Source: Chara braunii (Eukaryota; Plantae; Charophyceae). From it: a stretch of DNA of 64,000 bases. The notes below the pieces were generated by a model that worked only from the letters and a program-made list of their open reading frames with translations, was not told where the DNA came from and ran no database searches. A program made the translations under genes and the position numbers. Shown one piece after another: positions 15,828 to 56,997 of this stretch (positions are counted from its first letter, which is position 1; each line of letters begins with the position of its first letter). The stretch spans positions 181,204 to 245,203 of the forward strand of contig BFEA01000008.1 of NCBI GenBank assembly GCA_003427395.1, read 5' to 3'.

Positions 15828-15840
15828 GGCTCCGATACCA
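15828..15840 (-). promoter_or_regulatory. Primer-binding site complementary to initiator tRNA-Met (E1)
   Basis: TGGTATCGGAGCC directly after the LTR end CATGAGGT; plant tRNAiMet PBS consensus is TGGTATCAGAGCC. Confidence 0.88.
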
Positions 15841-17830: not shown

Positions 17831-19629
17831 TGTGACGCCCAACCTCACACCTAGCGCGACTTCCTGATCCTAGTGGGATGGGGGCCTGGAAGTGTGAAAA
17901 AGGAGTGTGCCAAGGATTTCGGAAAGTGGGGGTGGAGTCCCAGGTCGGAACTGAGATCTCTTGTGGCAAGTCTCGGGGGCAGAAGTGCAAGAGGGTAGGT
18001 GCAGGCCGTATTTAGGGCCTTGTTCATAAAAAGGTAGGCCGCCTCTCGTGCTCTGCGCACAGAAGGAAGGCTGCAGATGTCGTGCAGCATAAGGCAGATA
18101 GCATGCGCAGTGTACCCGAACTAAAGTTCCCAGGGTATTCTTCCGTAATCACAGGAGCGACAGATCTAAACGCTCTTGCATTCCCAACGACATAGCTGCG
18201 GCCAACGAACTCAATCACGCTTTTCAAAGTATTTTTGTAAGCCTTAGGCCCGAAGGATGGGAATCACCATCTTCTTCGGTTTCGTCTTTGTGGTCGGTCG
18301 AGGACCTGATGGACGGGGTGCACGCTATGGGTATCGCCCTGTCTGGTCAGTCGTTGTCGTCGATCGTTGCAAACTTCGGAATTGGACGACGAAGGTCTCA
18401 GCCGAAGGTTGTGTGCTCATCGTTCAGACTTCGTCCGGGTTCGGCGAATGAATCCCGAGGCTCGGTATTTGCTATCCTAAAGGCACTCAAAGCAAGGGGT
18501 TCGGGGCCAGTAGGGGGCGATCGCACCCCACGGGATAACAGTGAGGTAGTGGAAAGGTAACACTACTCGGTAAGGTGGGCAGTGAGTTATTAGGACGACG
18601 ACCCCAGGTTCGGAAAAGACATGGCTCGTGTGAGACTCAGGGAACTGAGCCACGTAGGGAACGGCGTCCAATGGTCTCCCTATATCCCAATCACACACTC
18701 GTTCATCTCCTCGCTGATAGGTGAATGTTGGAGGATCGGATCAGGGTTGTGCGAGGAAGTACGTGTTCTTTCTTGTCCAGTACTTTCGAAATTCGGGGTC
18801 CTGCAGGCTTTCCCAATCAGTGATGTGAAACATTCTATCCGTTTGATGTAAGCGCCGTTATGGCCCGCGTGCAGATCTTGCAGACACTCGTGTAGGCGTC
18901 GTCTCTTCCGGTCAGGCTTACACGGGCGTGCACAGGATCTGCTTACGGCTACTATGTGAGGGGCTGGTCCCCGATTAGCAGGAGTGGGCGTGAGCGATGG
19001 TCGATCAGGAAGATACGGTCCGGGTTAGCTTAATTCAAATTTCGTCACTTTCTAGTGCCCAACATCATTGCCCTCCCTTTTCCTAAGGCGCATGTCTTAC
19101 CCGAGCACGACCCTTCAGCCCCTCGCAAGCAACCAATCATGGGATCACGCACTCACGACTTTCACTCACACATGTATGACTGGTCAGTTCTTCCCTACGT
19201 GCGAATCCGAAGGGTCTGCGGGAATGACTCGCAATGCTGGGTTTTTATGAACGCATCCATTAAGGCAACAAAATTCCCATCAGACTCATTCACGCTTTAC
19301 CGAGGGCGAAAAAACGACAAGTAGGCGCAAATCAAAGGGAGAGACGACATACATTCAACACACAAACCAGTGAGCATGCAAAAGGAATTACGGATAGTAG
19401 TCGCGCCGAAAAACAGAGGGGAAACGAGAACAAACATCCATCGAATAGTCAGACATGGAGGATCTGATGAAGTTGAGAATAGCAGATGACGCACACCCAA
19501 AATTCGAGACAATTCACAAGAAAAATCCGAAGTTGCCACAACAAAAATTGGCCAAAGCGAAAGTCCAAAATTTACACAAAAGGGTTGGAAGAATAAAAAA
19601 CAAAAGAATAAGACAACAACCCGATCCGT

Positions 19630-19702
<73 letters not shown>

Positions 19703-21757
19703 GCGGCCAGTCCATCGCCTCGCACCAACATCGAGTCATCACCCTGCTTAGCCCAATCATGCTCGTCAAGTTCGCCCGTGCGCCACGGTCCGTCGTGGCC
19801 TGCACGTCAACCCCACTTACTTGGCGCCAGCCCGTCGGATCGCCCGACCCAATCTACTCACCTGCCAGCTTACTCGTTAGTCGATCCTCACTGACCGCGC
19901 TAACCTTCCAATATTCAGAGAAAGCAACTAATCGCTCTTGCGGAATTTATAGCATGCATGCGTGAGCGATGAATTTGGGATTATGCCTAAGCAAAGGAAG
20001 AGAGGAAATGCCTACGTCTGCATGTCCAGGCCGCGGCGCGGGGAACGGAGCCACTCTCCACACATCGATCCGGCCATGCAAACATGAGAACCAATCAGAG
20101 CAAAGGAAGAGAGTGTGCATATGCAAACGAAGATGGGGCGGGAAAAGAGAAGAACGCGAAAGGCATTAAGAACAGGAAGATTATAGTTGTATTCACGTCC
20201 GCCAAAAATTACAGTTATGCGCAAGATTAAGGCACGGAAAAGTAAGAGCCCAGATCTTGTCGCGACAAGGCGTGCGTAAGCAAGAAGTGTCGCGCAGCAA
20301 AATTCAAAAGGTGCCTAAATTCCTAACCTAAGTCCTAATTGCAAAAGGAAATTCGGAAAGACAAAGAAAAGAAAAAAATTCCGAGAGCCCTTGGGGGCTC
20401 GACATCAGTTGAAACTTGAAAAACGACATTCCCGTGCGTTGAATACACCAAAATTCACAGTGCTGACAGCAGAACAAAAAAGAAGCTATCGTACAGCTAT
20501 TCCTCGTGCTCGCTAAGGTGCGGCTACTAAATCGTCGGCGCGGGATTTTCCCGACACCGTCCCGACAACTTTCAACAGAAAAACGAAGAAGAAGCGAGGG
20601 CATCCATGCAACTAGCCCAACCGGCCCATCTCCATGCATCCCTCCTGGCTAACTCGTCCCATTCCCCCACAGCAGCCTTCGCACTGAAAGTCGCGCGATT
20701 ACAGAAAATAGTTTTTTTTTTTTTTTTTTTTTGCTTGTGAGGCCCTTGTGCAGGACCTCTATCCTAATGGTGGTAAGAGAACCACCGGGATTGAGGCTTT
20801 GCCTAGCGGGCCACTCCATCTATTGGTGGGGAGCAACACCTGCTGGAAACCGGGTCCAGCGTCCCTTAAATACATCTTTGTAAAACAGTACATCAATGAG
20901 AGTGACGCCAATGTGCTGGAAACCAGGTCCCGCGTCCCATATCCAATCTACTCTTCCATACCTAACCTGCAGTAGGGTCGGGTATTGGGGGGGGGACCAC
21001 CGGGGGGCACCAATGGAATCTGCCTCCATCCCCTAGCCTATGCCATCCTCCTACTATCCTCATGGCAACTATTGTGTCTTGCACTCTGCAATAACATGTG
21101 TTTGAGAAAAGTTGAATCAACAGAAAGCAGGCTGAAATGAGCTGCAGTGAAATCAGCTGAAATTTTTTTTGAGAAATACTGAAGAAACACCGAGGAATAC
21201 TGAAAATTTCTGAGAATTACTAAAATGATACTGCAAAAAAACTTCTCTGAGAATAACAATTCTTGAAACCAGGTCCAATCCACCAGCGTATTCAGACTGG
21301 GCAAGACTGTTGAAGACTATTGAGAAGACTATTGAGAAAAATATGAAATAAAGAGAAAGAGAGGAAAGTGAGGAAAGAAAAAGATGAAAGAGATGAAAGA
21401 GATGAGAGAAACAGGGGGGGGAAAGAAAGAAAGAACGAAGGCACAAATGAGCAGACAGTGGCCAAAGAAATGTCAGTAAGAGGGCTAAGAACAAAACTGG
21501 TACATGCTAGATCCCTTGGCTTATGCAGGCGGCAGGGTTTCTGTTAAGGAGAGTGGGTGGGGGGGGAAGGGGTCTGCGAAGTCCTGAGCTGCCCTTAATG
21601 ATTCACCAAGGTCTACTTTGATCCAATCATGGAAGATCAGCCGGTAGTCCCTTTCCATCTATATCCCGGGTTCCTCCTGTGGTTCCTTCTCAGACTGATT
21701 GCTCCCAGACCATTTTACCTCGGCCACCCATCCCTCCTTTTCCCTTAGTTCGTCACA
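17831..21757 (-). mobile_element. Solo LTR of a related subfamily, containing a probable ~1-kb non-LTR 3'-end insertion (~20711-21700)
   Basis: TGTGACGCCCAACCTCAC..CGTCACA with TSD TGAC (17827-17830 / 21758-21761). Similar to 59621-62194. The poly-T at ~20712 is followed by sequence resembling 53000-53050. Confidence 0.82.
19633..19700 (+). repeat. (CT)n microsatellite
   Basis: Direct inspection. Confidence 0.95.
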
Positions 21758-22129
21758 TGACTATTCAGATTCGTACGAAAATTCTCAGAGTTTTCCAAGA
21801 CGAAGTCAAGAACATTCCCGCACAAGAAAGGACATGTCAGGTCCCGCTCATTCCGGAATTCCTAACCGTCGACCCAAATTCCTAGCGCACTCGCTCATGC
21901 ACGCGTATTTCCCATATATTTCCCGAATTGCAAAAAAAAGATGGAATTCCAAAAAGCGCCCCAAAATGACGAAGGTCTAGAGAGAGACGGGCCTTTCCGC
22001 TCAATGCGCATTGATCCATGGAAACACAACAAGGGGCGTCTTCGGCCTGTTTGCACAGGATAACAAAAATGTGAAGAAAAGAAGGGGGGGGGAGGGAGAT
22101 GGTGCAGGTCCGGAAGCTGGCACGTCACA

Positions 22130-22632
22130 TAGGTAACCTTGTCCGCCAAGAGACGATCTTGAGTGCTGGAACAGTCCGTCAAGTTTATGAGGCATATGCA
22201 TACATGGCCCTGGTCCAGTTTATGAACCATTGGCCAAACCCCATTTTAGACATGGTGGTGGAGATGAAAGCCCAACCCACCTTGTCAAAGACCTTTTCCA
22301 TATCCAGGAGCAGCACAACCATGTTCCTCTCTTCCGTACTTATTACTTCCAGGGCCTGGACTGTCGTCAAAATATTCTAAAAAAACGAACAGCCTTTAAC
22401 AAAGGCACCTTGCTCGCACCCAACCAAGTAAGTCAGTTGCTCAGCTAAGCGGATGGCTAGAGCCTTTGCCATAATTTTGTAAGTTCCATTAAGAACCGAA
22501 ATCGGGCGGTCGTTTCGTACCTCCCTCTTATCCCCCTTCTTATAGAGGAGGGAGATCACCCCTTTGATAAACCCACCAGTGAGGAGGCCTGTCTCTAGGG
22601 ACTTATTATATATCTGGCAGAGAAAAGGAGCG
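22130..22632 (-). pseudogene. L1/Tx1-type LINE reverse transcriptase fragment (downstream part)
   Basis: GVISLLYKKGD..RPISVLNGTYKIMAKALAIRL..EQGAFVKG and LLDMEKVFDKVGWAFI..MGFG. Confidence 0.9.
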
Positions 22633-25420
22633 TGTGACGCGCTAACCTCACGCCCTGTGCTGTCTTTCATTCGGAGTGTTAGGCGCGCCGAAAGAGGCCC
22701 AGAAAAACAGCAAAATGGGGTGTGCCAAGGATTTTTGAAAATTGAGTGTGGGGATACAGATGGAACTGAAATCGATTGCTTTCGCGCGTCGCGGAATGCG
22801 CGCGCGGGCACGGCGTGACAAGAGACAAATCCAAATTCAATTCAAAAAGTATTTTTGGACTTCCCACCGAGCCACAGCCCGTCGTTTAGAACAGAAAGGC
22901 TTTGGCACGCTCCGCGTGTCTCATTTTCGTATCAAATCTCGTCGTCATTCGATGGTCAATTCTGAGTCCGACGTGGATGGTCTCAGTCGCGTGGTTCTTT
23001 CTTTATGCTCGTCTTCACTCCGCACACGGTAGTGGAAACCCCTAGATTCGTAGCGTTCAAAACGCTGGCATTCGGTGCATAGAGTGCGTGGCCAGTGGGG
23101 TTCTACTGCCGTCCACGGGATGACGATCAACTCGTTGAATGGCAACAATATCGAGTAAGGTGGGAAGTGCGTGTCGATAATGACAAACCCAGCCTCTACG
23201 AACCCTGAACGACGATTTGCTGGAGGGAAGTAATATCATCCGTCGATCTGTGCGACAGCTTCTCGCACGTCCCACTCGCATATACGTGTCCTTTCCTCGT
23301 TGTAAGGAAAAGGTCGTGTTGGGGCGGGAGATACAGGAGGTTGGTGCCCAATCGGAGGGTACTGGTTGGTCCACATATCAATCAATTGGAAAGACCTTGC
23401 GACGTCATCAAGAAAAGAAAACACTTGCGCAACTCATAGACAATTCCCTTCAACCCGAGAGGGAGAGAGAGAAAGAGAAAGAAGACACGTCAGCAGCTTG
23501 ATCATGCATATAACTAAGGGACCGATCCGCGGCTCAGGTTTAATGAGCCAGCGCGCCGTTGATCCCCGAGCGCCTTGTTTCTCGAGGCCGCCTCGTGGTT
23601 GGGCTGCGGATGTCGGACAGCATAAGGCAGATGGCATGCGCAGTGCACTCAAAGCTACAGATCTAAACACTCTTGCATTCTCGGACAAAATCCCGACGAC
23701 AATCGTCTAATCAATGTCAAAGAGACGCGCATTCCCATACATCCATTCACTGTGGAAGATGCGAAAATGAGCCATGCACAGAAAAAGATGGATTGCTTGC
23801 ACAGTACACACGCATCCACCGTTCACAAGACAAGAAAACGGGGTCCTTGCGCGGGAGGATTACCCAGGAAACTAATGGAAGAGTTTCGGAAGAAGTTCTT
23901 TCACGCAAGGAAAGCATACAGATTCATGCTCATCCAGAAGAGGGAAAAAAAAAGAGAGAGAAAGAGAGAGAGAAGCATCGAGACACATTATCATTCAAAG
24001 ATAGAGGAGAAAGGGGAAGGTGAGGGGGGGGGGGGAAGAGAGTCTAGATAGGAGATGACGCAACCCAAAAGAAGGAAGTTCAGAGAGAAAGATCCGCAAC
24101 AACAAAGGCGCATTCGCCGTTAATTCCAATATGGCCCCGGGCCAATAACTCACTCAACTTCAATCATCGATCCTCATACCCGCACCGACGATCCCGATCG
24201 TCGCGTGCTAACTCCCACCACTGCGATCGTCACCCCGCTTTCGTAGACTCGACACAGTTCGCCCAGATCCCACAGTCCGTCGTGGCGATCCAGCGCGCAA
24301 CCGGCCAGCCTATCGTCAGCCCGACAGGACTTTCCGATTAGCANNNNNNNNNNNNNNNNNNNNNNNNNNNNNNNNNNNNNNNNNNNNNNNNNNNNNNNNN
24401 NNNNNNNNNNNNNNNNNNNNNNNNNNNNNNNNNNNNNNNNNNNNNNNNNNNNNNNNNNNNNNNNNNNNNNNNNNNNNNNNNNNNNNNNNNNNNNNNNNNN
24501 NNNNNNNNNNNNNNNNNNNNNNNNNNNNNNNNNNNNNNNNNNNNNNNNNNNNNNNNNNNNNNNNNNNNNNNNNNNNNNNNNNNNNNNNNNNNNNNNNNNN
24601 NNNNNNNNNNNNNNNNNNNNNNNNNNNNNNNNNNNNNNNNNNNNNNNNNNNNNNNNNNNNNNNNNNNNNNNNNNNNNNNNNNNNNNNNNNNNNNNNNNGA
24701 TTGGCGAGCGGGAGTTATCGATGGATTGACCGGGCGTCGTGTGCCAGCCTCAGAGGGTGAGGGAAAAAAAAGGCGCGAGAAGTGGCGCAAGACGGGTCCA
24801 AGATTCAGATGATCAAGAAAGGAAAAGGGGCGCGCAAAGAGCAAGGCGGGAGAGAGAGAGAGAGAAAGAAAACAGTTACAGGGCGAGAGAAAGGGGAGGG
24901 AGAAAGGGAAAGGAGCGTGGGAGGGAGCGATGCGGGGGACAGAGAGGAGACAGCTTTGCACGCGCGGCGCCGTCAACAGAAAAAGAGAAAAAGGCACCGA
25001 AACAGTTACAGCCTAATTCAAAACTGAAATCAACATATCCGCGCGCGAAAGAGCGACGCGGGAAAAGAAAATCCTACGCCTATTCGTATTCGCACAAAAT
25101 TCCGAGAGTTTTCCCCGATGCGACCAAGAACATTCACACACACGAAAAGGACACGTCGATGTTCCGCTTATCCCGGAATTCCCAACTGCCGAGCCCAATT
25201 CCCAGTGCGTTCGCTAAGGTGTACGTAATTTCCTATGTATTTCCCGAATTGCAGAAAGGAAAAGTCGAACCCGGGATTCGAAAAAAACTTCCGAAAGATG
25301 GGGGCCAAAAACGCGGTACCCAAAATCAAGAAAACGAAACGGCGTTTTTATGGGGTTGGTATGATACAAGCACAAAAGGGGTACGAAAGATAGCACGGGT
25401 TCGGGAAGTGGTTCGTCACA
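22633..25420 (-). repeat. E2 3' LTR (~2.8 kb, contains N-gap)
   Basis: Highly similar to 33969-36716, plus 11 extra terminal nt (22633-22643). Confidence 0.95.
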
Positions 25421-25432
25421 TATGTGACGCGC
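25414..25432. other. Palindromic att-junction-like site CGTCACATATGTGACG plus internal copy of the terminal 10-mer, at the position of the PPT
   Basis: Perfect 16-bp palindrome at 25414-25429. 25423-25432 (TGTGACGCGC) is identical to 22633-22642. Confidence 0.9.
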
Positions 25433-25779
25433 AGGGGGTTCCGAAATTATGCGATCTCCTAATTATGTCATGGCGGAACAGAGTGATGCATGAGGAACCA
25501 AGCGTATCAACAAGCGATCCAGCCAGAGTCTATGTTGACGCCAACTGCAATTGCAGTTGTCTGTTGCTGGAATCCTCGATGGTGGTCCAGGTGACGCCAT
25601 CATCGTCCGCTGGTTCTGCGTGTGCTCTGCACCCCAGCTGGTTGTTGTCCGTCGAATCAGAGCGTGAGTTGACGTCATCGTCGATGGCGTGATCTTCGTG
25701 AAGCTTACTGATTCGTGCCGTTTTCCCCTGCTAATTGGATGAAGAGAGGGGGGAGGGGGGGTAGTGATGTGATCGGGAT

Positions 25780-26409
25780 CTACCTCCTAGTTGGAATGGG
25801 CCAATAGAGGCGGTACATGGAGGGGATTTCTCGGGGCCGACGGGGAGGAAGTGGGGGTAGGAAGCGATTCATTCCTTCTATCGTCACCAGAAGCTCCTCA
25901 TATCCGATGATCCGGTGGAAGTGGGGGAAGTGATCGCCGCTGCGAGGGAGGGAAGCAAGGTAGTCGCGATAGAAAGAGGAGAGGGTGCGGAAAAGCGCCG
26001 TTTGGAAGAACTCATAGTGGCGGCAGGCGGGGATTGTCCCCGTGGCAACGCAGTAAACCTCTACCACGTTGCATCGCTCCCATGCAGCGCTGAACAGCAA
26101 GAGATGCCAGCAGAACGTGGGGGCAGCGGATTGAAGGGAGGCGTGGGGGTGGACGGTGGCGAGTAGGCGGGTAGAATAGAAGTCGCGGAAGAGATGAAGA
26201 AGGAAGGGATGGGAAGGGAAGGTGACGGGAGTACGGATCTGCTCGAGGGTGAGGAAATCAAGGGGTTGGCGGGACAGCGTCCAAGGACGAAGGCCTATCG
26301 CCCGCATCGGTACGTGGGCGAACTGGGGGACGGGTTGGGCTGGAGGAGGAGGGGGATCGACTCCGTCTCCGTCGAGCGGTACTTGAGGTGGCGGCTGCAA
26401 GGTCGCCAT
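25780..26409 (-). CDS. E2 accessory ORF 3 (~209 aa from MATLQPPP), unknown function
   Basis: Open frame in the sense of the element between integrase and the 3' LTR, with a globular-looking aromatic-rich core. Confidence 0.5.
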   Translation of the reverse strand: MATLQPPPQVPLDGDGVDPPPPPAQPVPQFAHVPMRAIGLRPWTLSRQPLDFLTLEQIRTPVTFPSHPFLLHLFRDFYSTRLLATVHPHASLQSAAPTFCWHLLLFSAAWERCNVVEVYCVATGTIPACRHYEFFQTALFRTLSSFYRDYLASLPRSGDHFPHFHRIIGYEELLVTIEGMNRFLPPLPPRRPREIPSMYRLYWPIPTRR

Positions 26410-27286
26410 CTTCGGGCTTCGGTAGCTCTGGATCCCTAGTCGGATCGTTACCGATGAGCAGGCTAGCTTTGCTGGCGAACTCCAGCTGGCGCTTCCCGGT
26501 GGCAATTTCTTCGCGCTTTCGCGCCGCTTCCGGATCTTCCGCCTCCGTTTCCGTACGCGTTGCCTCCTCCGGCACGGCTTCCCACTCAGATCCTGTTTCT
26601 TCTTCCTCCTCTTCTCCTTCACTCAGCTCGCCCTCGCTATGTTCACTATAGCTCCCCTCCTCCAATGTTTCCTCGTCTTCATCCTCTTCGTCGTCGTCGT
26701 CGATCACCACTTCCTCTTCCCTCAGATAGAAGGCGTGAGGGATGATATCGTACAGCTTCAGATACTCCTGCCGCGATGGTAGCGTATCCTCGTCCCTAGG
26801 TTCCTCCAAGCACGCAGTCCACTGAAGATACGGATCCAATGATCGCTCGAAAATGTATGGAGCAGGACTGTCGTCACTATGAAAATAGATGTCGGGCGAG
26901 AGATCGTCCGCCAATTGCACGATTGGTGTGATGAGCTCTTGCGCAATCAGCTGGCGGCGCCCCGGCTGTACCGATCCAAAGAGAAAGCCAAGAAGATTGC
27001 CCTCCGCGTTAGTCCTCCAAGCTTGGATGATTAGCAGTTCCGGATTTTCGATCCACGCAGGATGGCCGCTGGTCTGTGTCCACGTCACCTGTATTCTGGC
27101 CAAGCAAAAAAACAGCTCCTCAAAAGTTTCGCGCCACAGCCGCCAATGTCCAGGATTGATAAGAGGGACCGAAAGAGGCTCGAATGAGAAGGAAAGAGAA
27201 GGATGAAGATCGGATTGCCAGAAGGTGGGGAAGAGAGAGGGGAGACCAAAGATAGAGAGAGGAGCGAGAAGATCGACGTGGTTCAT
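26258..27286 (-). CDS. E2 accessory ORF 2 (342 aa; globular N-half, acidic tract, RS-rich tail), unknown function
   Basis: Long intact ORF in sense orientation downstream of integrase. Confidence 0.6.
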   Translation of the reverse strand: MNHVDLLAPLSIFGLPSLFPTFWQSDLHPSLSFSFEPLSVPLINPGHWRLWRETFEELFFCLARIQVTWTQTSGHPAWIENPELLIIQAWRTNAEGNLLGFLFGSVQPGRRQLIAQELITPIVQLADDLSPDIYFHSDDSPAPYIFERSLDPYLQWTACLEEPRDEDTLPSRQEYLKLYDIIPHAFYLREEEVVIDDDDEEDEDEETLEEGSYSEHSEGELSEGEEEEEETGSEWEAVPEEATRTETEAEDPEAARKREEIATGKRQLEFASKASLLIGNDPTRDPELPKPEDGDLAAATSSTARRRRSRSPSSSSPTRPPVRPRTDAGDRPSSLDAVPPTP

Positions 27287-27411
27287 TGGGGATGTGGGAA
27301 GGGGATGAGGGTTGGGATCGCAACTAGCCGCTCACGCGGTGATCGGCGAATATCGCCAAGATCCAATGCAAAGATCGGGATGAGGTTATACCCTTGTCGG
27401 GCGAGGACGTG

Positions 27412-27750
27412 CTACCACATGTTGAACACTTGCTCCGTCCACTCGCGCAGCGAGGTCAAGATCGTGGTATGCCACTGCGGATTGACCGAGCTGATGTCAC
27501 CGCTGAACGCCGCAACCGTGGTAACGTGGCTCGTTCTGGGGCCCGCTCGCCGATGAACTGCGGTTACCTCCGCGAATACCACTGCGTGAGGACTTCCTTC
27601 GATTCGAAACGCAGCGGCGGCACAGATACCTTCGTCGCAGAAGAATCGCATTAATCGGCGACGATCTGCATTGAGTCGAGGGTGACAAACTTGCCGAATC
27701 TCTGAGATGTGGCCATGTGGCTGCAACAGCTGTGCGTCAAGAAGAGGCAC
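27412..27750 (-). CDS. E2 possible accessory ORF 1 (112 aa)
   Basis: Sense ORF after the integrase C-terminus; start uncertain. Confidence 0.35.
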   Translation of the reverse strand: MPLLDAQLLQPHGHISEIRQVCHPRLNADRRRLMRFFCDEGICAAAAFRIEGSPHAVVFAEVTAVHRRAGPRTSHVTTVAAFSGDISSVNPQWHTTILTSLREWTEQVFNMW

Positions 27751-27949
27751 TAGCCTCAGGAGCGATGCGCACCGTGATAAAACTCATGGCGAGGTGGGAG
27801 AGGAGGACGAAGGACAAGAGGGAGAAAGAGGAGAGAGAGTTAGATCGTCGTCGTTCTCTTCGCTTTCCGAGGAAGAAGAGGGAGGAAGATCAGGAGGAGG
27901 AAGAAGACGGAGGTAGGAGGTATGTCGGACAATGGGGACAGAGTTATGG

Positions 27950-29574
27950 CTGGCACTAGCCTCAGGCGCGATGCGCACCGTGTTGGCGCCGTTGAGTCCG
28001 AGCTCGACAACGTGAAAACAGCCAGAAAACTTGGGAGCGAGTTTCCGGTCGCGTGCACATTTACGTACCTGCACTAGGTCCCCTAATTTATATTGATGCT
28101 GGGGCCCAGCATTTCCATTCCGATCCTCGTAGCTACGGACCTATCTACCGTGGGCCAGTTCGGTCATCCTTTGCCTTTTTCGGGCTAGCTTCGGGACGAC
28201 CCGTTCCATTAATTCAGTGTACCTTTTGGCCTTGGCTTTGAAAGTTGTACGCGTGTCTCTACCCCCTGCTTCGGCAATTTCCGAGTTACCTCGGTAGTCG
28301 ACACAGGGGAGGCTATTAGTTCGAAGTTGAAAAGGGGTAAACCCCGTGGACTCGTGAGGGGTGGCCCGGTGGATCCCAACAATTTGATATACGATCTCAG
28401 GCCAAGGACGTGCGTCATGTGCCGGTAAGTTCCTGCGAAGGGCGGTTTTGATCATACGGTTGGCATTTTCGGCCAACCCGTTTGACTAGGACACGTGGGG
28501 TGTCGTATGTCGGAGCGTGATGCCCCTTCGCGCAAGCAGTTCTTCTACCTCACCTTTGAATTCGGACCGATTGGCGGTCACAATTTCTTCCGTATCTAGA
28601 TGGGTATAGAGGAACCGTTCGATGTACGTGGCTATTTCTGCGGCTTTTTGGGTCTTACAGGGATAGACTTCGATGTACTTGGAAAAATGATCTATTAATA
28701 CTAGCAGGATAGAATATTCACAGCGGTTTGGGCCAGGTGGCACGTCGATATCTGTCGCGTCCATACTAACTCGCTGGAAAGGACGCTCTACTTCCGTTGG
28801 TACGATCGTGTTTGGTCCCCGTATAGGGGCGCGATCAGCGGCACAGACCAGACAGTTAGCGACAATGTATTTGACATCATCTCGTATATTGGACCAGAAC
28901 CATCGGTTCTGATCTACAGTTGCCTCCGCGACACGTATTGCGAAATGAGCGGCCTGTTCCTCGTGAGCAAATCGAATCCAATCATATCTCTGGAATGGAT
29001 GGGGAATCGTCAACCACGAGCCCGAACCGTCAGTTTTACGTTTTTCCAAATGGCCGTTGACCCATCGATAGTCCCGAGATCTCTCCGTCGCCCTACGTCT
29101 GTCGTGTTTGGTAAGGTGACCCAATGATAATCCCCCTAATTTTGCCAATAAAATTTTATCCGTCCAAACCTCCGCTCGTCGGTATTTTTCGTCGTATTCA
29201 GGGTCGTCCGTACGGGCGGTCTCGAATCGAACCTCCGTGGGGAGTTTGTTCGTTCTACACAGGGGGCACCTCCACTCCTTGTTATTCGTCCGATATCGAA
29301 CGCAGGCCCCGTGCGCACGATTGACACACGTGGCACATTCTACCCAGTCAACAAACCTGGTTTCGAAAGGACGGCAGTCGACCCCATGGACCCGTGCGAT
29401 GCACGTGCAAAAATAACAGAATTTGTCGGGGAGGGTGGCAAAGAAAGCTGAGGACGTGAGAGGGGCAGCATTAGTAGGAGATGAAGGGGTAGCGGAGGCA
29501 AGTGGGGTAATCATGATGACAGAGAAGGAAGGGATGCAGAGAGGGTAGAATAGACCAATGAGTCCTCGTGTCAC
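27950..29574 (-). pseudogene. PHD finger-integrase (HHCC, DDE core, GPY/F-like tail), broken by a stop at 28486 and further lesions
   Basis: PHD CYFCTC..WVECATCVNRAHGAC..WRCPLC. HHCC H-EEQAA-H..CLVC. Core PFQRVSMD, IDHFSKY, TANRSEF (second Asp lost), NGLAENANR, TPHESTGFTPFQL. Tail KLAPKFSGCFHV. Confidence 0.9.
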
Positions 29575-32282
29575 TCACTGCTTCGATAAGATCTCCACTT
29601 GGCCGTACCAAGGTCCGATCTCTTGTTCGGGTTCGTTCCACGGAATCACCTCCTCACTCTTCGGAACCTTCTCAGGCCGGTGCAGTCGTGTCAGTCCGTC
29701 CGCATTCCCGTGTCTCTCGTGCTTTCGATGACGGATGTCAAAGTCCATGCTCTGCAGCACCGTTGCCCATTGCCCGATCATGCGAGAGTTATCCTTCGAT
29801 TTCTTCAGAGCCAACAAGGGCTCATGGTCAGTTACCAAGGTGAACTTTCGCCCGTACAGGTAAGCGCGGAAGTAGCTGATACCCCAGAGAGCCGCGTCGC
29901 ATTCCCCCGTCGGAGCGTCGTAGTTGCGCTTGCAAGCTGGCACCGATTTGGAGGCGTACTCCACCACACTCTCGAGTCCGCTTGGTCCCACCTGGGCAAG
30001 GATCGCCGAAATTGCCTCTGGCTGCCAGTCAGTGATGAGAACAAAAGGCTTTTCGGGATCCGGTCTTATAAGGACCGGGGCCGAAATGAGAGCGGTCTTG
30101 AGTTTGGAAAACGCTTAATCGCACTCCGGCGTCCAGATCAACGGCTGATCTTTGCGCAGCAGATTCGTGAGGGGTCCCGCAATCGCCACGAAGCCCTTGA
30201 TAAATCTTCGGTAGTACAAGGCCAGGCCCAGAAAGGCGCGAACTTGCATGATAGTTGTAGGCACCGGCGCGTCCCTGACAGCTGCCACCTTCTGTGACTC
30301 CGGCTGGAGTCCCTTGTCTGTCACCACGTGCCCTAGGAAGGAAATGGTGGTGAGGAAAAATTGACACTTCTCAAGCGCCACCTTGAAGCCCGCATCTCGT
30401 AACGCGTGCAGTGCCCATTCGATGTGTTGCACGTGTCCCTCGTAGGAACTTGAATACACCAAGATATCATCCATGTACACAATCACGCAGTAGTTGATAA
30501 TGCTCTGTGCCAACCGAGTCTTTCTCACGAAATTCTGAAAAGCCATGTTTATGGCTCGCTGAAAGGTCGCGGGGGCGTTGTAGATACCCATCGGACATCG
30601 AATCCACTGCCATGTGCCCTCGAAAAGTACAAACGCTGTTTTCAGACGATCTTCTTCTCGAACAAGAAGATGATGGAACCCATGGCGAACATCAAATTTG
30701 TTGAAAAATCGAGCACTCCCAATCGCATCCAACAACTCATCAATCCGGGGGAGGGGGTACACATCTTTGATCATGATATCATTCAACTTTCGATAATCAA
30801 TGCAAATGCGAATCCCTCCAGTCTTTTTAGGCACGATTACTACGGGAAAAGATTAGGGACCTATGGCGGGTTCGATCCATCCATTAACTTCGAACTCCTT
30901 AATCCGCTGAAAAGCGGCCGGTCTTTGAGCTGGCGAGTATCGGTAAGGAACGCAGCTAATGGGTGGATGGTCTCCCGTGAGAATGGCATGCTCGATCACA
31001 TTAGTTAAGCCAATGTCATTATCATGTATGCTCAATACTTCCGCGTACCCGTTTAACACGTAGATTAATGATTTTCGAAGTTCTGCGGGGACGTGACCTG
31101 GCAGGGTGATTGTTGATTCCTCGAAAATCTCAAGGGGCACATCGACCCAATCATCCGGCCGTTCCTACCGATCATGGACACTAGAGAAAACGGAACTACT
31201 GGTGCGAACAGAGAAAACTGTAGCTATCATCTGGGACTCTGCGGGGCTGATCACCTTTGTTTCTTTGGCTTCAGCATCAGTCTCTGAATCAACCGAGGTC
31301 GGTTCCACAGTTAGCCCCGCTAGATCCGTCATTTCCTGCATCAGATCAGGTACGTCACTTACTGGTGCTTCCGCCTCTTGTTTAATCAAAATGATGGTGG
31401 CTCCTGGCGTTAGTAACGTTCTGGGCGGGAAAACAGAAACATCCAAATATTGTTCCATTTGCTGATAACGCGTACGTAAGGACAGAGCTCCTTCGTACAA
31501 GGTGCGAGGGGGTTCCGAATCATCTGTCAGGTCAGATACTTGTAATATAGGTTCCCCAAGCAGGGCCGAAGGATTAACTTGCGTTATCGGAGGCGCAAAC
31601 ACGCTGTCTCCTGAATCCACGTGGAAACTTTGAACAGGGTCGGGGCACACTTGGAATTCCTCGGGAATTTCGTGTTCGAAAAGTTCAACCAGGTGCTTCC
31701 ATTCATCTTCGCTAGGCAGCTCTTCTTCGTATTCCTGTTCCCGGATTCCATCACTGATGTGCGAGGGAGAGCGCTCCTCGGAATCAATGCATTGAATCAT
31801 CCCAATTTGGGCCAAGTTAGGGACCCGTTGAATCGTTCGGGTGGAAACTCGCAAGGGAACAGTTTGAGGCTTTCCCCCAGTTTGCGTGAGCACCGATTGT
31901 TTCGAATCGAAATGCAGGCGTGCGCCCACCGCCATCGCCCAAGGTAATCCGAACAACAAAGAATAAGAACGTACATCTATTACGAGCACGTTAACAAGAA
32001 CGTGTACTCGTCCGACTTTTACAGCCACGTTCTCGATAATGCCTACGATGTGCATTGCTTCCTCGTCGGCAGAGACATAATTGTCTTTGCCAGATTGAGG
32101 AAGAATGGATCCAAGTCGTCCCGTCTTTTTTACTGTATCCAATGATATGGCCACGACAGAAGATCATGTGTCAATAAGGGCATTAAACAGCTTGCCCCAA
32201 ACTTCACAGTCACATTCCGCACTTTTTCACAATACCGGTCGAGCTCGTACGAAGTGATTTTTTTCTGCTAAAGAGATCGCTG
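29575..32282 (-). pseudogene. E2 pol: protease, RT, RNase H with several premature stops
   Basis: Protease ALIDT*SS (DTG mutated to a stop). RT CIDYRKLN, NAPATFQ, YMDD. RNase H FTLVTDHEPL..HGNADGLTR. Confidence 0.93.
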
Positions 32283-33833
32283 CTATACGTGCCGCTTCGG
32301 GTTTAGGTTCTCTCGTGTCCGGCTCGGGGGGTGCAACTCCTCGCTTCCTTCCTTCTTTTTCAACATCCGTTGTATGCGCTGATAGGTAAAGCGCTTTTGA
32401 TTTTTCTGGCAATGTTGTAAAAGTTTACCGTTCGCGGCTTCAGATATGGTGAGCAGATGTCCTCCTGGGATAGGAATGCGAATATCTAGTTGCTTGAGCG
32501 ATTTCAATACATCAATATCTCCTGTCCGAAATTGCAGTCCAGGATTGGATTCGCGATCGACCCATTCGAGATCATTTGGGGCCGATCGGATCGCTCCGAT
32601 CATGCCTGCAAGATGAAGATACTTGAGGGGATCGACCACATCAGCAGCGTCAGAGGAAGAAGCTCCAGAGGTCGACGCTGTTGCCATCGAAGGGGAAGGC
32701 TGCTTTGGGGCATATGCCACGAGTTCTCCTCCTTGATCCGTATCCATCAGGGCGGCCACTCGTCCTTGATTAAGGGCGACAGGGGCCGCAGCAGGGGGAG
32801 GCTGATTACATTTCGACTGCGGACAGTCCCGGGCGAAATGCCTGGGCTGTTTGCAGTTAAAGCACTCGATCTTTCCTGCTGGATTAGCTAGATGAGGGAA
32901 CTGAGGTGCGAACCCTGGAGCAGGCGGGGCAGGTAAGAGTGGAAATGATGCGGGGCCAGGCCGAGCAGGAGCCGGGTTAGGCTTAATTATCCTGCTCATT
33001 ATTTGTTCCATTCGTTCCATATGAGCGGCTTGCATTTGGATCAAGTTGCTCATCCGATCGGACTGCTTAGTAGTGGCCGTATGGATCATTTGGGCAAGGT
33101 GTGAGTTGGTTATGGCCGGCGAGGAGGGTTCGGGTGAGATTCCGCTTTTAACGACTGCGATCGATTGATTCGCCGGAGGAGAGGAAGAAGACGCAGGCGG
33201 GGTATCGGAAACGATCCCACCGGGGAGGTCATGGTCGGGGCGGGGATAAAACCGTTCGACCGCCTGCAGCCATGATCGCCTTTTAGCCGTTACATCCCGT
33301 ATAGTATCTGTGATGTCTTCGTCTCCCTGGCTGATATACTTTTTTGTATCAATCAGGTCCAGTTCCAATGCTTTAGTGATGATAGCCCATAACTGGTGAG
33401 TTTTCAGCGGAACCTTTTTCTGCAGTTTGCCTTTCAATGTAGGACTTCGTAGATGGTCGATGAACAAATCTCGAGCGGATTTCTCGTCTCGCCCGGATTT
33501 GTCCAGCGTGGTTTGAAATCGATCGACCAAATCGGGTAACCATTCCCCTGGTCCTTGTGGCCGATTTTTGAGTACGTACCAGACGGCATCTTCACTAACC
33601 GTATCAAATTGAGCCAAGAAAGCTTGCTTGAAAGTATCCCAGTCTACCCACGTATGTTTTCTAAACCAGTCATGCGACGTATTGCGGAGTAGCAATGTCA
33701 AAACGCGGGGAAAATCGATTGCGCTGTAGTTTTGAGCTTCGACAACTTCTAGCCAAGCCTCGGGGTGGGTATGGTTAGGGAAGAAGGGGAAGGGTGCGGG
33801 GATACTAACGATCACCCTAGTACCATCCACCAT
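32283..33833 (-). CDS. E2 Gag (capsid-like region plus CCHC zinc knuckle)
   Basis: 516-aa ORF starting ~120 nt after the PBS; WDTFKQAFLAQF and CFNCKQPRHFARDC. Confidence 0.92.
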   Translation of the reverse strand: MVDGTRVIVSIPAPFPFFPNHTHPEAWLEVVEAQNYSAIDFPRVLTLLLRNTSHDWFRKHTWVDWDTFKQAFLAQFDTVSEDAVWYVLKNRPQGPGEWLPDLVDRFQTTLDKSGRDEKSARDLFIDHLRSPTLKGKLQKKVPLKTHQLWAIITKALELDLIDTKKYISQGDEDITDTIRDVTAKRRSWLQAVERFYPRPDHDLPGGIVSDTPPASSSSPPANQSIAVVKSGISPEPSSPAITNSHLAQMIHTATTKQSDRMSNLIQMQAAHMERMEQIMSRIIKPNPAPARPGPASFPLLPAPPAPGFAPQFPHLANPAGKIECFNCKQPRHFARDCPQSKCNQPPPAAAPVALNQGRVAALMDTDQGGELVAYAPKQPSPSMATASTSGASSSDAADVVDPLKYLHLAGMIGAIRSAPNDLEWVDRESNPGLQFRTGDIDVLKSLKQLDIRIPIPGGHLLTISEAANGKLLQHCQKNQKRFTYQRIQRMLKKKEGSEELHPPSRTRENLNPKRHV

Positions 33834-33956
33834 TGGTGCCGCGGGTGCAGCCGCACCAGACTAAGACCGGGTTACTGGACGATCCCGACGAACTAGTTGC
33901 GGGCCTCTCCTACCTCTCGCCGGTTCGACTTACTATCATTAGAACCGACACGTGTC

Positions 33957-33969
33957 GGCTCCGATACCA
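33957..33969 (-). promoter_or_regulatory. E2 PBS (initiator tRNA-Met), overlapping 14-bp palindrome CCGACACGTGTCGG at 33945-33958
   Basis: TGGTATCGGAGCC immediately after GTGAGGT. Confidence 0.9.
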
Positions 33970-36716
33970 ACCTCACGCCCTGTGCTGTCTTTCGTTCGGA
34001 GTGTTAGGCGTCCGGAAAGAGGCCCATAAAAACAGCAAAATGGGGTGTGCCAAGGATTTTTGGAAATTGAGTGTGGGGACACAGATGAAACTGAAATCCC
34101 CCGTGTTGGTCCAATGAAGCAAGTCGATTGCTTTCGCGCGTCGCGGAATGCGAGCGCGGGCACGGAGCGACAAGAGACAAATCCAAATTCAATCCAAAAA
34201 GTATTGTTGGACTTCCCACCGAGCCACAACTCGTCGTTTAGAACAGAAAGGCTTTGGCACGCTTCGCGTGTCTCGTTTTCGTATCAAATCTCGTCGTCGT
34301 TCGATGGTCAGTTTCGAGTCCGACGTGGATGGTCTCAGCCGCGTGACTCTTTCTTTATGCTCGTCTTCACTCCGCACACGGTAGTGGAAACCCCTGGATT
34401 CGTAGCGTTCAAAACGCTGGCATTCGGTGCATAGAGTGAGTGGCCAGTGGGGTTCTACTGCCGTCCACGGGATGACGATCAACTCGTTGAATGGCAACAA
34501 TATCGAGTAAGGTGGGAAGTGTGTGTCGAGAATGATAAACCCAGCCTCTACGAACCCTGAACAACGATTTGCCAGAGGGAAGTGGTATCGTCCGCCGATC
34601 TGTGCGACAACTTCTCGCACATCCCACTTGCATATACGTGTCCTTTCCTCGTTGTACGGAAAAGGCCGTGTTGGGGCGGGAGATACGGGAGGCTGGTGCC
34701 CAATCGAAGGGTACTGGTTGGTCCACATATCAATCAATTGGAAAGACCTTGCGACGTCATCAAGAAAAGAAAACACTCGCGCAACTCATAGACAAGTCCC
34801 TTCAACCCGAGAGGGAGAGAGAGAGAGAGAAAGAAGACATGTCAGCAGCTTGATCATGCATATAACTAAGGGACCGATCCGCGGCTCAGGTTTAATGAGC
34901 CAGCGCGCCGTTGATCCCCGGGCGCCTTGTTTCTCGAGGCCGCCTCGTGGTTGGGCTGCGGATGTCGGACAACATAAGGCAGATGGCATGCGCAGTGCAC
35001 TCAAAGCTACAAATCTAAACACTCTTGCATTCTCGAACAAAATCCCACAATCATCTAATCAATGTCAAAGAGACGCGCATTCCCATACATCCATTCGTTG
35101 TGGAAGATGCGAAAATGAGCCATGCACTGAAAAAGATGGATTGATTGCACAGTACACACGCATCCACCGTTCACAAGACAAGAAGACGGGGTCCTTGCGC
35201 GGGAGGATTACCCAGGAAACTAATGGAAGAGTTCCGAAAGAAGTTCTTTCACGCAAGGAAAGCATACAGATTCATGCTCGTCCAGAAGAGGGAAAAAAAA
35301 GAGAGAGAGAGAAAGAGAGAGAGAAGAATCGAGACACATTATCATTCAAAGATAGAGGAGAAAGGGGAAGGTGAAGGGGGGGGGGGAAGAGAGTCTAGAT
35401 AGGAGATGCCGCAACCCAAAAGAAGGAAGTTCAGAGAGAAAGATCCACAAAAACAAAGGCGCATTCGCCGTTAATTCTAATATGGCCCCGGGCCAATAAC
35501 TCACTCAACTCCAATCATCGATCCTCATACCCGCACCGACGATCCCGGCCGCCGCGTGCTTACTCCCTTCACTGCGATCGTCACACCGCTTTCGTAGAAT
35601 CGACACAGTTCGCCCAGATCCCACAGTCCGTCGTGGCGATCCAGCGCGCAACCGGCCAGCCTATCGTCAGCCCGACAGGACTTTCCGATTAGCANNNNNN
35701 NNNNNNNNNNNNNNNNNNNNNNNNNNNNNNNNNNNNNNNNNNNNNNNNNNNNNNNNNNNNNNNNNNNNNNNNNNNNNNNNNNNNNNNNNNNNNNNNNNNN
35801 NNNNNNNNNNNNNNNNNNNNNNNNNNNNNNNNNNNNNNNNNNNNNNNNNNNNNNNNNNNNNNNNNNNNNNNNNNNNNNNNNNNNNNNNNNNNNNNNNNNN
35901 NNNNNNNNNNNNNNNNNNNNNNNNNNNNNNNNNNNNNNNNNNNNNNNNNNNNNNNNNNNNNNNNNNNNNNNNNNNNNNNNNNNNNNNNNNNNNNGATTGG
36001 CGAGCGGGAGTTATCGATGGATTGACCGGGCGTCGTGTGCCAGCCTCAGAGGGTGAGGGAAAAAAAAGGCGCGAGAAGTGGCGCAAGACAGGTCCAAGAT
36101 TCAGATGATCAAGAAAGGAAAAGGGGCGCGCAGAGAGCAAGGCGGGAGAGAGAGAGAGAGAAAGAAAACAGTTACAGGGCGAGAGAAAGGGGAGAGAGAA
36201 GGGGAAAGGAGCGTGGGAGGGAGCGATGCGGGGGACAGAGAGGAGACAGCTTTGCACGCGCGGTGCCGTCAACAGAAAGAGAGAAAAAGGCACCGAAACA
36301 GTTACAGCCTAATTCAAAATTGAAATCACCATATCCGCGCGCGAAAGAGCGACGCGGGAAAAGAAAATCCTATGCCTATTCGTATTCGCACAAAATTCCG
36401 AGAGTTTTCCCTGACGCGACCAAGAACATTCACACACACGAAAAGGACACGTCGATGTTCCGCTTACCCCGGAATTCCCAACTGCCGAGGCCAATTCCCA
36501 GTGCGTTCGCTAAGGCGGACGTAATTTCCTATGTATTTCCCGAATTGCAGAAAGGAAAAGCAGAACCCGGGATTCGAAAAAAGCTTCCGAAAGATGGGGG
36601 CCAAAAACGCGGTACCCAAAATCAAGAAAACGAAACAGGGTTTTTATGGGGTTGGTATGATACAAGCACAAAAGGGGAACGAAAGATAGCATGGGTTCGG
36701 GAAGTGGTTCGTCACA
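33970..36716 (-). repeat. E2 5' LTR (lacks terminal CA; contains N-gap)
   Basis: Matches 22645-25420 and joins the PBS directly. Confidence 0.95.
34189..34728 (-). CDS. LTR-encoded ~179-aa protein with CxxC motif (MWT..PPYSILLPFNELIVIPW..CTEC..LRPSTSDS)
   Basis: Homologous frames in other LTR copies (ORFs 16068, 18477, 22945/23236, 56169, 58479, 59816), with synonymous divergence. Confidence 0.72.
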   Translation of the reverse strand: MWTNQYPSIGHQPPVSPAPTRPFPYNEERTRICKWDVREVVAQIGGRYHFPLANRCSGFVEAGFIILDTHFPPYSILLPFNELIVIPWTAVEPHWPLTLCTECQRFERYESRGFHYRVRSEDEHKERVTRLRPSTSDSKLTIERRRDLIRKRDTRSVPKPFCSKRRVVARWEVQQYFLD

Positions 36717-36720
36717 AGCG

Positions 36721-39643: not shown

Positions 39644-41423
39644 TCCTTCTCGCTGTCCTCTTTCCCTCTCGTCTCGTGTTTGGTTTCATCTTCTGCGCCT
39701 TATGCAAGATATGGCGCAGTAGCGTATTTGCCCTCCTTCTCTCCTCCTCCTCCTCCTCCTCCTTTCCTCTCTCTTTTCAGCCTTATCTCGGTCAGACTCG
39801 GCGCTTAAATCCACAGTAGTAATCACCGCTAATCTCCTCGGTTGGACAGCCTCTCCTGCTCGCAGGTATCTGGGCTTGTCTTGGATAGAAATCCTTCCGC
39901 TTTTTTCGCTGTGGACGACTCGTTTCCCCCNNNNNNNNNNNNNNNNNNNNNNNNNNNNNNNNNNNNNNNNNNNNNNNNNNNNNNNNNNNNNNNNNNNNNN
40001 NNNNNNNNNNNNNNNNNNNNNNNNNNNNNNNNNNNNNNCCCCCTTACCGTCTTGCGTTTCCGTCTTCGCCTTTCTGTGACTCCAAACCTGGTCCCACCAC
40101 TGGCTATTCTCATCCGTCTTCTTCCGTTCACTCTTTCTACACCATCCGTGCGTCTATGCGGGCTTTTCCTCTGCTCTCTTTTGGAAGCATGCACGCATGC
40201 AGGCTTCTCCCTCCTCCTCTTTTCCGGCCGAGGATTCTGTGCCGCAATGAGAAAGGATTGCCCTTGTGTAGTACGGTCGATCCTTAACACAATAAGGCGG
40301 GCGTGATTGTGACTGGCATGCGAGAGGGAGCAGTGGCTGTCGGTTCCAACCCCCGCTGTCGTCCCACATTTGGCGGGAACACCTAACGATGGCGAGCTGA
40401 AGCTTGTTGTCCGGGCGGCAGGTGCCTGTCCTGGGACCTCAGTAGGATACGCTCTGCAGTGGGTGATCGCATGCCTACGGACATCAGACGCGCTATCAAT
40501 CCACACTCTCCATGCTGGGAGGCCTCTCTGTCGGTCCGCCCTCCCTGCCGACGAGCAGGCATCTCTCTATCCCTCCGCGCATACCAACCTTCCTGCCTCT
40601 CAACCTGTGCATGCGTAGCTCACTATCAACCTTTGCCTCTCTGCTCTCAACCTGTGCATGCGTAGCTCACTATATCAACCTTTGCCTCTCTGCCTGTGCA
40701 CGCGGGTTCTGAGGGCGATGTGCCTAATGTTGAAGTCATTGGTAATGAAGACGACCTGATGAATGAGATGGTGTCCTCTCCTCCGAGCAATGACGATGAA
40801 GATGCAGGCGCTCTCTGGGGCCGACCGGCGGAAAACGGGGGCCTCCGTCGAATGGGCTCGAAATGAACGTGTATGAGCTGAAGAGGTCGTGTGCGTTCTT
40901 TATCCGCCTTCTTGATCTCTCTCCATTGCCGTGAACACGTTTTTTTCCGCAAGCGAGCAGGGATCTGCCGAGAGCGTGTGCTTGTCGGGTGGTGGCTTGG
41001 ATCGGCATGCATTGTCTGAACGCGAGGCGAAGACCGCACGGCGAGGGCTGGTGAAATAGAGATTGGAGCTGCAAAATGAGGGAGGGGTAGAATGAGGGAG
41101 GGGGAGAATATGATTTGATATGTGGTTCAGACCTCGGCGGGGCCGTGCTGTAGGTAGAGTTGCCGTGGCTGCTGCAGTAGCTGTAGCTTCCTTGGTAGGC
41201 CAAACAGCTGCAAGCAACAGCGGGCCCGGCAGCAGCGCGAGGGACGAGAGCAAGAGGAGCTGTAGGAGGAGGAGGAGGAAGAGGAGGAGGAGGAGAAGGG
41301 GAGTGAAGTCGTGTGAATGAGTTTGTGGGATCGAGAAAGGTGAGGAGGCGGGAGGCTTGCGATATACTAGTAGAGTAATGAGTGCGCAGCGGCGAATGAG
41401 GAGGAAGTGATATGGTTACGAAC

Positions 41424-41461
41424 CTGTCTCTTATACACATCTAGATGTGTATAAGAGACAG
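41424..41461. other. Nextera mate-pair junction adapter (assembly contaminant) with artefactual ~130-bp flank duplication
   Basis: Exact CTGTCTCTTATACACATCT+AGATGTGTATAAGAGACAG; 41293-41423 is repeated at 41462-41592. Confidence 0.98.
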
Positions 41462-41600
41462 GAGAAGGGGAGTGAAGTCGTGTGAATGAGTTTGTGGGAT
41501 CGAGAAAGGTGAGGAGGCGGGAGGCTTGCGATATACTAGTAGAGTAATGAGTGCGCAGCGGCGAATGAGGAGGAAGTGATATGGTTACGAACGATGAACG

Positions 41601-56985: not shown

Positions 56986-56997
56986 GAGCCTCACATA

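Follow-up and report, generated by a model that had tools for sequence, protein, structure and literature searches.

In textbook reverse transcription, a retrotransposon acquires two identical long terminal repeats (LTRs), each ending with CA, and the resulting linear DNA can be used directly by the integrase. Where this DNA ends on the right is determined by the boundary of tRNA primer and U5. Split direct repeats are known from PAT, Ngaro and DIRS, retroelements that depend on a tyrosine recombinase (PMC4157794, PMC7192593). Here we describe E2, an element on contig BFEA01000008.1 of Chara braunii (assembly GCA_003427395.1). The contig positions 181,204 to 245,203, a stretch of 64,000 nucleotides, are called the window, and all window positions count from its first letter. 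Located on the minus strand (22633-36716), E2 belongs to the Ty3/gypsy group, encodes a DDE integrase and is flanked by a 4-bp target-site duplication (TSD). By gene content, primer-binding site (PBS) and TSD, E2 and its relatives are Gypsy elements, but they depart from this class in having neither identical LTRs ending with CA nor a polypurine tract (PPT). In the reading that we favour, to which we give an even chance, U5 does not end with the right-end integrase site (NNN-CGTCACA). This site is instead encoded a single time, directly in front of the 3′ LTR, and makes up CA-NN-TG with a two-base spacer and the LTR start. The DNA copy would begin with this site and have its ends joined, and only then would the integrase act.

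The preliminary description had already placed the element between these positions, and its ends, coordinates and strings all checked out. The TSD AGCG adjoins the 5′ LTR (36717-36720) as well as the opposite terminus (22629-22632), and simple arithmetic on the coordinates of the interrupted host open reading frame (ORF) brings it back into phase once E2 and one AGCG are removed. The host sequence at the insertion contains a weak RVT_1 match (22185-22370, minus strand); no empty-site paralogue of the host element was found in the sequence compared. The following features all lie on the minus strand. The 5′ LTR (A1; 33970-36716) starts with TGTGACGAAC and ends with GGGCGTGAGGT, without a terminal CA. 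Directly 3′ of its last bases GAGGT stands the PBS TGGTATCGGAGCC (33957-33969), which we take to be of the initiator-tRNA-Met type. At the other side of the internal region, the motif GGAACCCCCT (25433-25442), preceded by a small conserved hairpin, occupies the usual place of the PPT. It abuts B1 (25423-25432), the internal copy of the 10-mer GCGCGTCACA, which is absent from A1. The spacer TA (25421-25422) separates the CA of B1 from the TG of the 3′ LTR and forms the centre of the perfect 16-bp palindrome CGTCACATATGTGACG (25414-25429). The 3′ LTR proper (A2; 22645-25420) begins directly after B1 and TA with TGTGACG, has the same start TGTGACGAAC and is 94-97% identical to A1. Its terminus reads GAGGT-T-A-GCGCGTCACA: a joint at 22643-22644, composed of a T common to all copies and an extra A present only in E2 and L008, is followed by B2, the terminal copy of the 10-mer (22633-22642), which provides the terminal CA and, with it, the right-hand arm of the inverted repeat of 7 bp at the element ends. 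The repetition of the terminal 10-mer upstream of the 3′ LTR and the palindrome were thus found just as first reported. Treating the A of GGTT-A-GCGCG as a feature of the design had to be abandoned, as it is specific to some copies.

The split layout is not peculiar to E2. Other C. braunii loci were reached via annotated protein fragments, a route possibly biased to intact coding regions, and the whole survey covers about a dozen copies. Eight of them, on seven other scaffolds, contain both junctions (L001, L002 with one copy on each strand, L003, L004, L005, L006 and L007); partial copies are a solo LTR in L004 and the rearranged copies L008 and L009. For the counts of termini, the window elements E4 and E5 as well as the L004 minus strand and L008 were added. 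E2 and the eight copies share the split layout and represent at least four families. All of the 5′ LTRs (11/11) are without the 10-mer and end with (C/T)GTGAGGT or CATGAGGT, and in all copies the PBS TGGTATC(G/A)GAGC follows directly. The missing CA had been noticed in E2 and in E1, a related element of the window (junction 15841/15840), and was confirmed for both. Each 3′ LTR is preceded by GGAACCCC(C/T)T, the 10-mer and two bases, while every element terminus consists of GAGGT-T, none to two further bases and a 10-mer matching the internal one of the same element. The two LTRs therefore neither extend equally far nor run from TG to CA at both places; only the 3′ LTR carries the T and the 10-mer ending with CA. 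Perfect 4-bp TSDs enclose the sequence from TG to the CA of B2 in six insertions (E2, AGCG; L001, CATC; L002 plus strand, AGGA; L004 plus strand, GGCG; L007, AGTT; E4, TGAC).

Two loci deviate in their flanks. In L005 (14384-14400), the 3′ flank reads CACA-GG-TGCT and the 5′ flank ends with TGCT, so that a TSD fits only with two extra bases after the terminal CA; these bases are possibly an unprocessed spacer, which is GA in that family. The solo LTR in L004 (904-3637, minus strand) belongs to a further subfamily, ends with GAGGTT-GTGCGTCACA and has no matching TSD, as expected from recombination between different copies.

The sequence of the 10-mer differs between the families: GCGCGTCACA in the E2 family, GGGCGTCACA in the second, GCGTATCACA in the third (with the spacer GA and the LTR start TGTGATA) and GAGCGTCACA in E3, the variable part before TCACA being GCGCG, GGGCG, GAGCG or GCGTA. 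Within copies, B1 and B2 showed a total of four mismatches over ten copies, compared with a mean of 14.0 for shuffled partners, and only 9 of 20000 shuffles gave a value as low. Since copies of one family are not independent, the real sample is four families; with this proviso, the co-variation proposed in the preliminary description was borne out. The LTR start, too, changes together with the final seven bases of B: a start with TGTGACG goes with CGTCACA in B, a start with TGTGATA with TATCACA, so that CG is replaced by TA in both arms. The terminal inverted repeat expected for the integrase is accordingly composed of the LTR start and B and not of the two ends of one LTR. Two other origins of B2 were considered and rejected. 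B2 is no target or TSD sequence, because the TSDs lie outside of it and B co-varies by family, nor is it a copied tRNA primer, because no match to the PBS follows U5 in the 3′ LTR.

We also examined the place where a PPT should reside. As stated at the outset of this work, there is none, and the flank is C-rich: no copy has a purine tract adjoining the 3′ LTR, and the nearest purine run, of 5-6 nt, lies about 35 nt upstream of it. In each of the nine coding copies, the 22 bases in front of the 3′ LTR are GGAACCCCCT, B and two bases. Directly in front of B1, the motif is exact in seven of the nine, while L001 and L006 have GGAACCCCTT, with one mismatch. It is usually preceded by TT(T/C), and the small hairpin upstream shows compensatory changes. 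The same GGAACCCCCT recurs once or twice inside each element, in sense orientation within the gag-pol region. In E2 this internal motif (31507-31516, minus strand) lies inside the coding sequence, where it covers the codons E-P-P, and is a candidate central plus-strand primer site. Further internal copies start or lie at 1739-1748 of the window, at 6309 of L001, 7551 and 7707 of L002, 7577 and 7733 of L003, 9049 of L004, 9076 of L005 and 11870 and 12026 of L006; in three families two of them stand about 156 nt apart. Of all invariant blocks in the alignment of the otherwise poorly conserved coding region, that of the internal motif is the longest, and it is unchanged even at third codon positions. 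The window contains three exact matches, all within E1 or E2, against 0.24 expected. This distribution is the pattern of two primer sites, one at the 3′ end and one central, and would assign a priming role to both.

The joint between U5 and B2 was compared in 14 termini. In all of them B2 follows U5 and T. Eleven joints contain no extra bases, two contain an A (E2 and L008) and one, the minus-strand copy of L002, contains TT. Neither E2 nor L008 has the other as its closest relative. Although the numbers are small, extra bases at one exact position in 3 of 14 termini suggest that the joint is remade in each cycle.

A different view of the first base of B was provided by E3 (53910-59271, plus strand), which had been regarded as a second copy of the arrangement. 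It does have the same 10-mer arrangement, but it is not a full element: it consists of two LTRs, 88% identical and 55 nt apart, with neither a coding region nor a TSD, and its 10-mers B1 and B2 differ at one base. The first LTR (53910-56941) and a T (56942) are followed by the 3′ half of a tRNA including CCA (56943-56985), B1 (56986-56995), TA, the second LTR (56998-59260), a T (59261) and B2 (59262-59271). The element is flanked by GGTC on one side and by TATG on the other; TATG, at the right, is the continuation expected of the palindrome. The tRNA piece of 43 nt, in sense orientation, is joined to GAGGT-T on one side and to the first base of B1 on the other, and thus takes the place of the motif. 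It corresponds to tRNA positions 34-76, beginning at the CAT anticodon and comprising the AGGTC variable loop, a perfect 5-bp T stem with the loop CTCGAAC, the 7-nt acceptor strand, the discriminator base and CCA, and presumably stems from an elongator-Met-like tRNA. The Rfam tRNA model aligned it with 14.9 bits, below the threshold, because only the 3′ half is present. CCA is added to tRNAs after transcription; the piece must therefore have been copied from a mature tRNA or a tRNA half. Two events may account for its orientation: either the tRNA primed a strand starting with B, or a minus strand left the end of its template at B, jumped to the tRNA and then to a strand ending with U5-T. In both cases E3 would mark the start of B as an end of DNA or of a template. 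That the reverse-transcribed repeat begins with B is thus supported by three independent observations, B2 abutting U5 and T, the motif ending where B1 starts, and the CCA of the E3 tRNA abutting B.

From these data the following replication cycle is proposed. A tRNA bound to the PBS would prime the minus strand, and the right DNA end would stop at GAGGT and one T, contributed by the last base of the primer, without CA. The start of the plus strand would be set by GGAACCCCCT instead of a purine tract; B might be synthesised as the first stretch of DNA or might itself be the RNA primer, and in either case the left duplex end would be B-NN-U3-R-U5. Since the right end GAGGT plus T lacks CA and no canonical step adds B to it, we propose that it is joined to the left end containing B, whereby up to two untemplated bases may be added at the joint. 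This could be achieved by a template switch of the reverse transcriptase (RT) onto the complement of B; if B were an RNA primer since removed, synthesis would stop at CA and leave a ready 3′ OH. The other conceivable route is ligation into a circle. Finally, the integrase would use the CA on each side of NN, so that B-NN would be lost from the left end while B would be kept at the right. The outcome would be A1-PBS-internal-B1-NN-A2-T-B2 with a 4-bp TSD, B2 being remade from B1 in every cycle. The template switch would give the same product as a circle, leave the internal palindrome untouched and account for the untemplated bases. Other schemes were tried on paper. Those with read-through transcripts, self-priming or retained primers all fail to combine a B after U5 with a PBS-proximal LTR that lacks it, and self-priming as in Tf1 was rejected because the complement of the PBS occurs nowhere in the LTR. 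The only schemes that reproduced the structure join the end of U5 to a left end containing B and then use the CA flanking the two-base spacer.

Several points weigh against this proposal. All copies examined are old and broken, and every step beyond their anatomy is deduced from such genomic relics. The internal motif sits in coding sequence (E-P-P), so that a constraint on the peptide could explain its conservation, and C-rich RNAs are not known to withstand RNase H in the way a purine tract does. The A shared by E2 and L008 could be inherited, which would imply a templated U5-B2 joint. E3 is a single case without TSD, and its tRNA could equally have been a primer of the plus strand. Moreover, integrases normally act on recessed duplex ends, while the end arising from the joining step would be a nicked duplex or a 3′ overhang.

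The alternative that survives best is a closed circle. According to it, a linear DNA with B-TA-U3-R-U5 at both ends is ligated by the host to a 2-LTR circle, and the integrase then cuts the CA-TA-TG palindrome of the LTR-LTR junction in the manner of a site-specific endonuclease. We regard this as unlikely, although it yields the observed product, the extra bases at the U5-B2 joint also fit end joining, and integrases of prototype foamy virus (PFV) and HIV-1 (human immunodeficiency virus type 1) are known to cleave junction palindromes (PMC1180852, PMC1905944, PMC4372172). Such a circle would, however, have the palindrome at two places, with the same core of 10+2+7 bp. Cleavage at the internal place instead of the junction would produce permuted copies with tandem LTRs, while cutting both, or the use of linear DNA, would produce copies with one LTR. 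Permuted insertions, a search for which the preliminary description suggested, and single-LTR copies were seen in none of the eight full copies (0/8), which argues against free cutting of either palindrome. In addition, a tRNA inserted in sense orientation, as in E3, arises more easily through RT than through ligation of DNA. Of the scheme first put forward, a cDNA repeat B-TA-U3-R-U5 that is ligated into a circle and cut by the integrase, the start with B has gained the three supports named above, and nothing in these copies shows ligation or the cutting of a circle. The more specific proposition of an LTR lineage with DDE integrase for which a closed 2-LTR circle is the obligatory precursor, with the integrase cutting a single encoded att palindrome and priming occurring without a PPT, is likewise one that we would rather not expect to be true.

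B2 might also be inherited. In this case the transcript would cover the whole 3′ LTR including T-B2, a non-standard priming or strand transfer would copy B2, and the 5′ LTR would be rebuilt without B. The same extra A in two copies of the E2 family would be accounted for, and cleavage and polyadenylation at CA are plausible. The two copies with the A are not closest relatives, though, and the PBS adjoining the 5′ LTR is conserved and canonical. RNA sequence 3′ of R is not copied after the first strand transfer onto R, and we did not succeed in constructing a workable scheme. Inheritance of B2 is therefore rated very unlikely. Hardly better, and if anything a little worse, are the prospects of a plus strand whose primer is a host tRNA, or the 3′ half of one, that pairs with the minus-strand DNA immediately upstream of B as with a second, plus-strand PBS. 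The primer would then have been preserved in E3, where the CCA of tRNA positions 34-76 is directly followed by the first base of B. The nine coding copies, among which there are no full copies of the E1/E3 family, all have GGAACCCC(C/T)T in front of B1, which neither ends with CCA nor resembles a tRNA.

Recombination by a tyrosine recombinase or by another circle-based mechanism, as in PAT, Ngaro and DIRS, would create split repeats of the same A1...B1-A2-B2 geometry. The likeness to PAT and Ngaro, already pointed out in the preliminary description, holds for this geometry and ends there: the elements encode a DDE integrase that has an H2C2 finger and an rve core, six of the insertions are flanked by perfect 4-bp TSDs, and B comprises only 10 nt. 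No tyrosine recombinase or ligase was detected by Pfam or PDB matches in the 3′ ORFs, nor a recombinase match in any ORF, and we consider this origin highly improbable. An assembly artefact or mis-set LTR boundaries in a canonical element, as the gaps in both E2 LTRs might suggest, can be practically dismissed, because these gaps are about 720 nt away from the nearest junction with flanks collinear to gap-free relatives, the junctions recur on eight scaffolds and the TSDs fix the ends.

The gaps of E2 (24344-24698 in the 3′ LTR, 35695-35994 in the 5′ LTR) occupy homologous positions in the two LTRs, each about 720 nt away from where the LTR starts. On either side they are continued by sequence collinear with the 3′ LTRs of L007 and L001, which have no gap there and comprise 264-272 nt in the corresponding stretch. 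Being far from every junction, the gaps leave the junctions untouched. Assembly gaps recur in LTRs of these families, often at similar positions (L001, 1755-2569; L002, 1725-2924; L003, 2312-3716 and 14161-15440; L006, 16544-17740). Assembling this LTR part seems to be difficult, and there are purine-rich GA/G runs close by.

The coding region of E2 (minus strand) contains a gag ORF with a CCHC zinc knuckle (32283-33833) and pol pieces interrupted by stops and frameshifts (28486-30834), namely RT (30115-30834), RNase H (29575-29991) and the integrase with H2C2 and rve (28486-29574). Pfam matches follow the Gypsy order zf-CCHC, RVT_1, RT_RNaseH, Integrase_H2C2 and rve, spread over several ORFs. 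Hypothetical proteins of C. braunii are the sole matches of the proteins that the window encodes. N-terminal to H2C2 there are weak PHD-like and CXXC-like zinc-finger matches (E = 0.003 and 0.0009), which are unusual for Gypsy integrases (window 28486-29574, minus strand; L002 9494-10426, plus strand). Two overlapping 3′ ORFs (25780-27286) have no Pfam or PDB match. A chromodomain (PF00385) was not matched in the ORFs downstream of rve in E2, L002 and L007; the copies are degenerate, which makes this weak evidence.

Beyond the preliminary description, two further termini of the E2 kind were identified in the window, at 17831 and 59621. The first belongs to E4 (17831-21757, minus strand), a solo-LTR-like insertion with the start TGTGACGAAC, the end GAGGTT-GGGCGTCACA (B2, 17831-17840) and the TSD TGAC. 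E4 splits the 5′ LTR of E1, whose PBS and first LTR part reside at 15828-17830 (minus strand) and whose remaining LTR part is found at 21758-22129; the E1 PBS (15840-15828) directly follows ...CATGAGGT, as in E2. E1 passes beyond the window start. Its gag is interrupted by about 11.3 kb (3623-14973) with short ORFs only and several small gaps, the gag pieces being 15677-14974 and 3622-2642. The second terminus, E5 (59621-59638, minus strand), reads GTGAGGTT-GGGCGTCACA (GAGGTT-GGGCGTCACA). Among the annotated Chara proteins no full-length copy of the E1/E3 family was found, and 290 kb scanned for Chara tRNA genes, by which the tRNAs of the PBS and of E3 might be identified, contained none. The window also harbors a U2 spliceosomal RNA gene or pseudogene (49440-49543, plus strand; Rfam RF00004, 50.5 bits, threshold 46), a match of only 104 nt that nevertheless aligns end to end with the 192-position model. 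Two tandem duplications, at 51246-51664 (2 x 208 nt, 98% identity) and 41291-41592 (133 nt repeated, 100% identity), are unrelated to the elements described here.

Relatives outside Chara were sought in metagenomes. A scan for the motif, B and TG gave no match, while the U5 end with the PBS was found in 13 contigs. Two short ones are Chara-like and the others are unrelated or too short to judge. The short records BFBZ01002763.1 and BFBZ01014550.1 (L012 and L017), with a Chara-type U5 end and PBS, are clearly family members. In two contigs of 10-11 kb from other samples (L011, L019), the same 19-mer stands in other surroundings; these contigs might represent LTR elements of no relation. In the literature on split or permuted LTRs, PPT-less elements and Chara retrotransposons we found no description of the layout; most subscription literature was outside this search.

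As U5 ends without CA and the right-end site is stored beside the 3′ LTR, an end-joining step seems to be built into the life cycle. Probably, the DNA copy has its two ends joined before the integrase cuts, unlike standard LTR elements. If so, these would be the first LTR retrotransposons with a DDE integrase that require end-joined or circular DNA as an intermediate and not as a dead-end by-product, and also the first with a plus-strand primer signal that is not a purine tract. Should the closed circle be correct, nature would have realised the circle-junction model, which was given up for retroviruses. On the practical side, programs that search for LTRs and rely on a PPT and on TG..CA in both LTRs will misplace the boundaries of these abundant Chara elements.

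With the canonical plant Ty3/gypsy elements (Metaviridae) the Chara elements share the CCHC gag, the order of RT, RNase H and H2C2 plus rve, long direct LTRs and a tRNA-type PBS directly after the 5′ LTR. The whole element also runs from TG to CA with a 7-bp inverted repeat, generates a 4-bp TSD and has a two-base spacer before the TG of the 3′ LTR. They differ from them in the 5′ LTR lacking CA, in the 3′ LTR being 11-13 bp longer by an extra 10-mer that is repeated upstream of it, and in the C-rich motif replacing the PPT. The two-base spacer resembles the attachment site PPT-AT-TG of Sireviruses, whose PPT is canonical and which have no 10-nt gap (PMC2829016). Lentiviruses and Ty1 possess central polypurine tracts (cited in PMC2829016), which are likewise exact second copies, within the coding region, of the sequence in front of the 3′ LTR, but the Chara repeat is C-rich and no purine tract, and its role in priming is a presumed one.

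A closer parallel is the retroviral 2-LTR junction. PFV integrase (PMC1180852) and, in vitro, HIV-1 integrase (PMC1905944) cut the palindromic LTR-LTR junction (see also PMC4372172), and there, too, a palindrome of CA, spacer and TG is composed of right and left ends, from which cutting by a DDE integrase gives two processed ends. The retroviral palindrome arises only after ligation of two complete LTRs, whereas that of the Chara elements is encoded internally and the right end must first obtain B. PAT, Ngaro and DIRS have in common with the Chara elements the A1...B1-A2-B2 order and an internal copy of the junction of both termini. They employ a tyrosine recombinase, create no TSD and possess long B modules, in contrast to the DDE integrase, 4-bp TSDs and 10-nt B found here. 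Hepadnaviruses have neither LTRs nor an integrase; their priming is organised by short direct repeats of 10-12 nt, and the genome consists in the circle itself. Their circularisation is formally similar to the joining by template switch that is proposed for the Chara elements.

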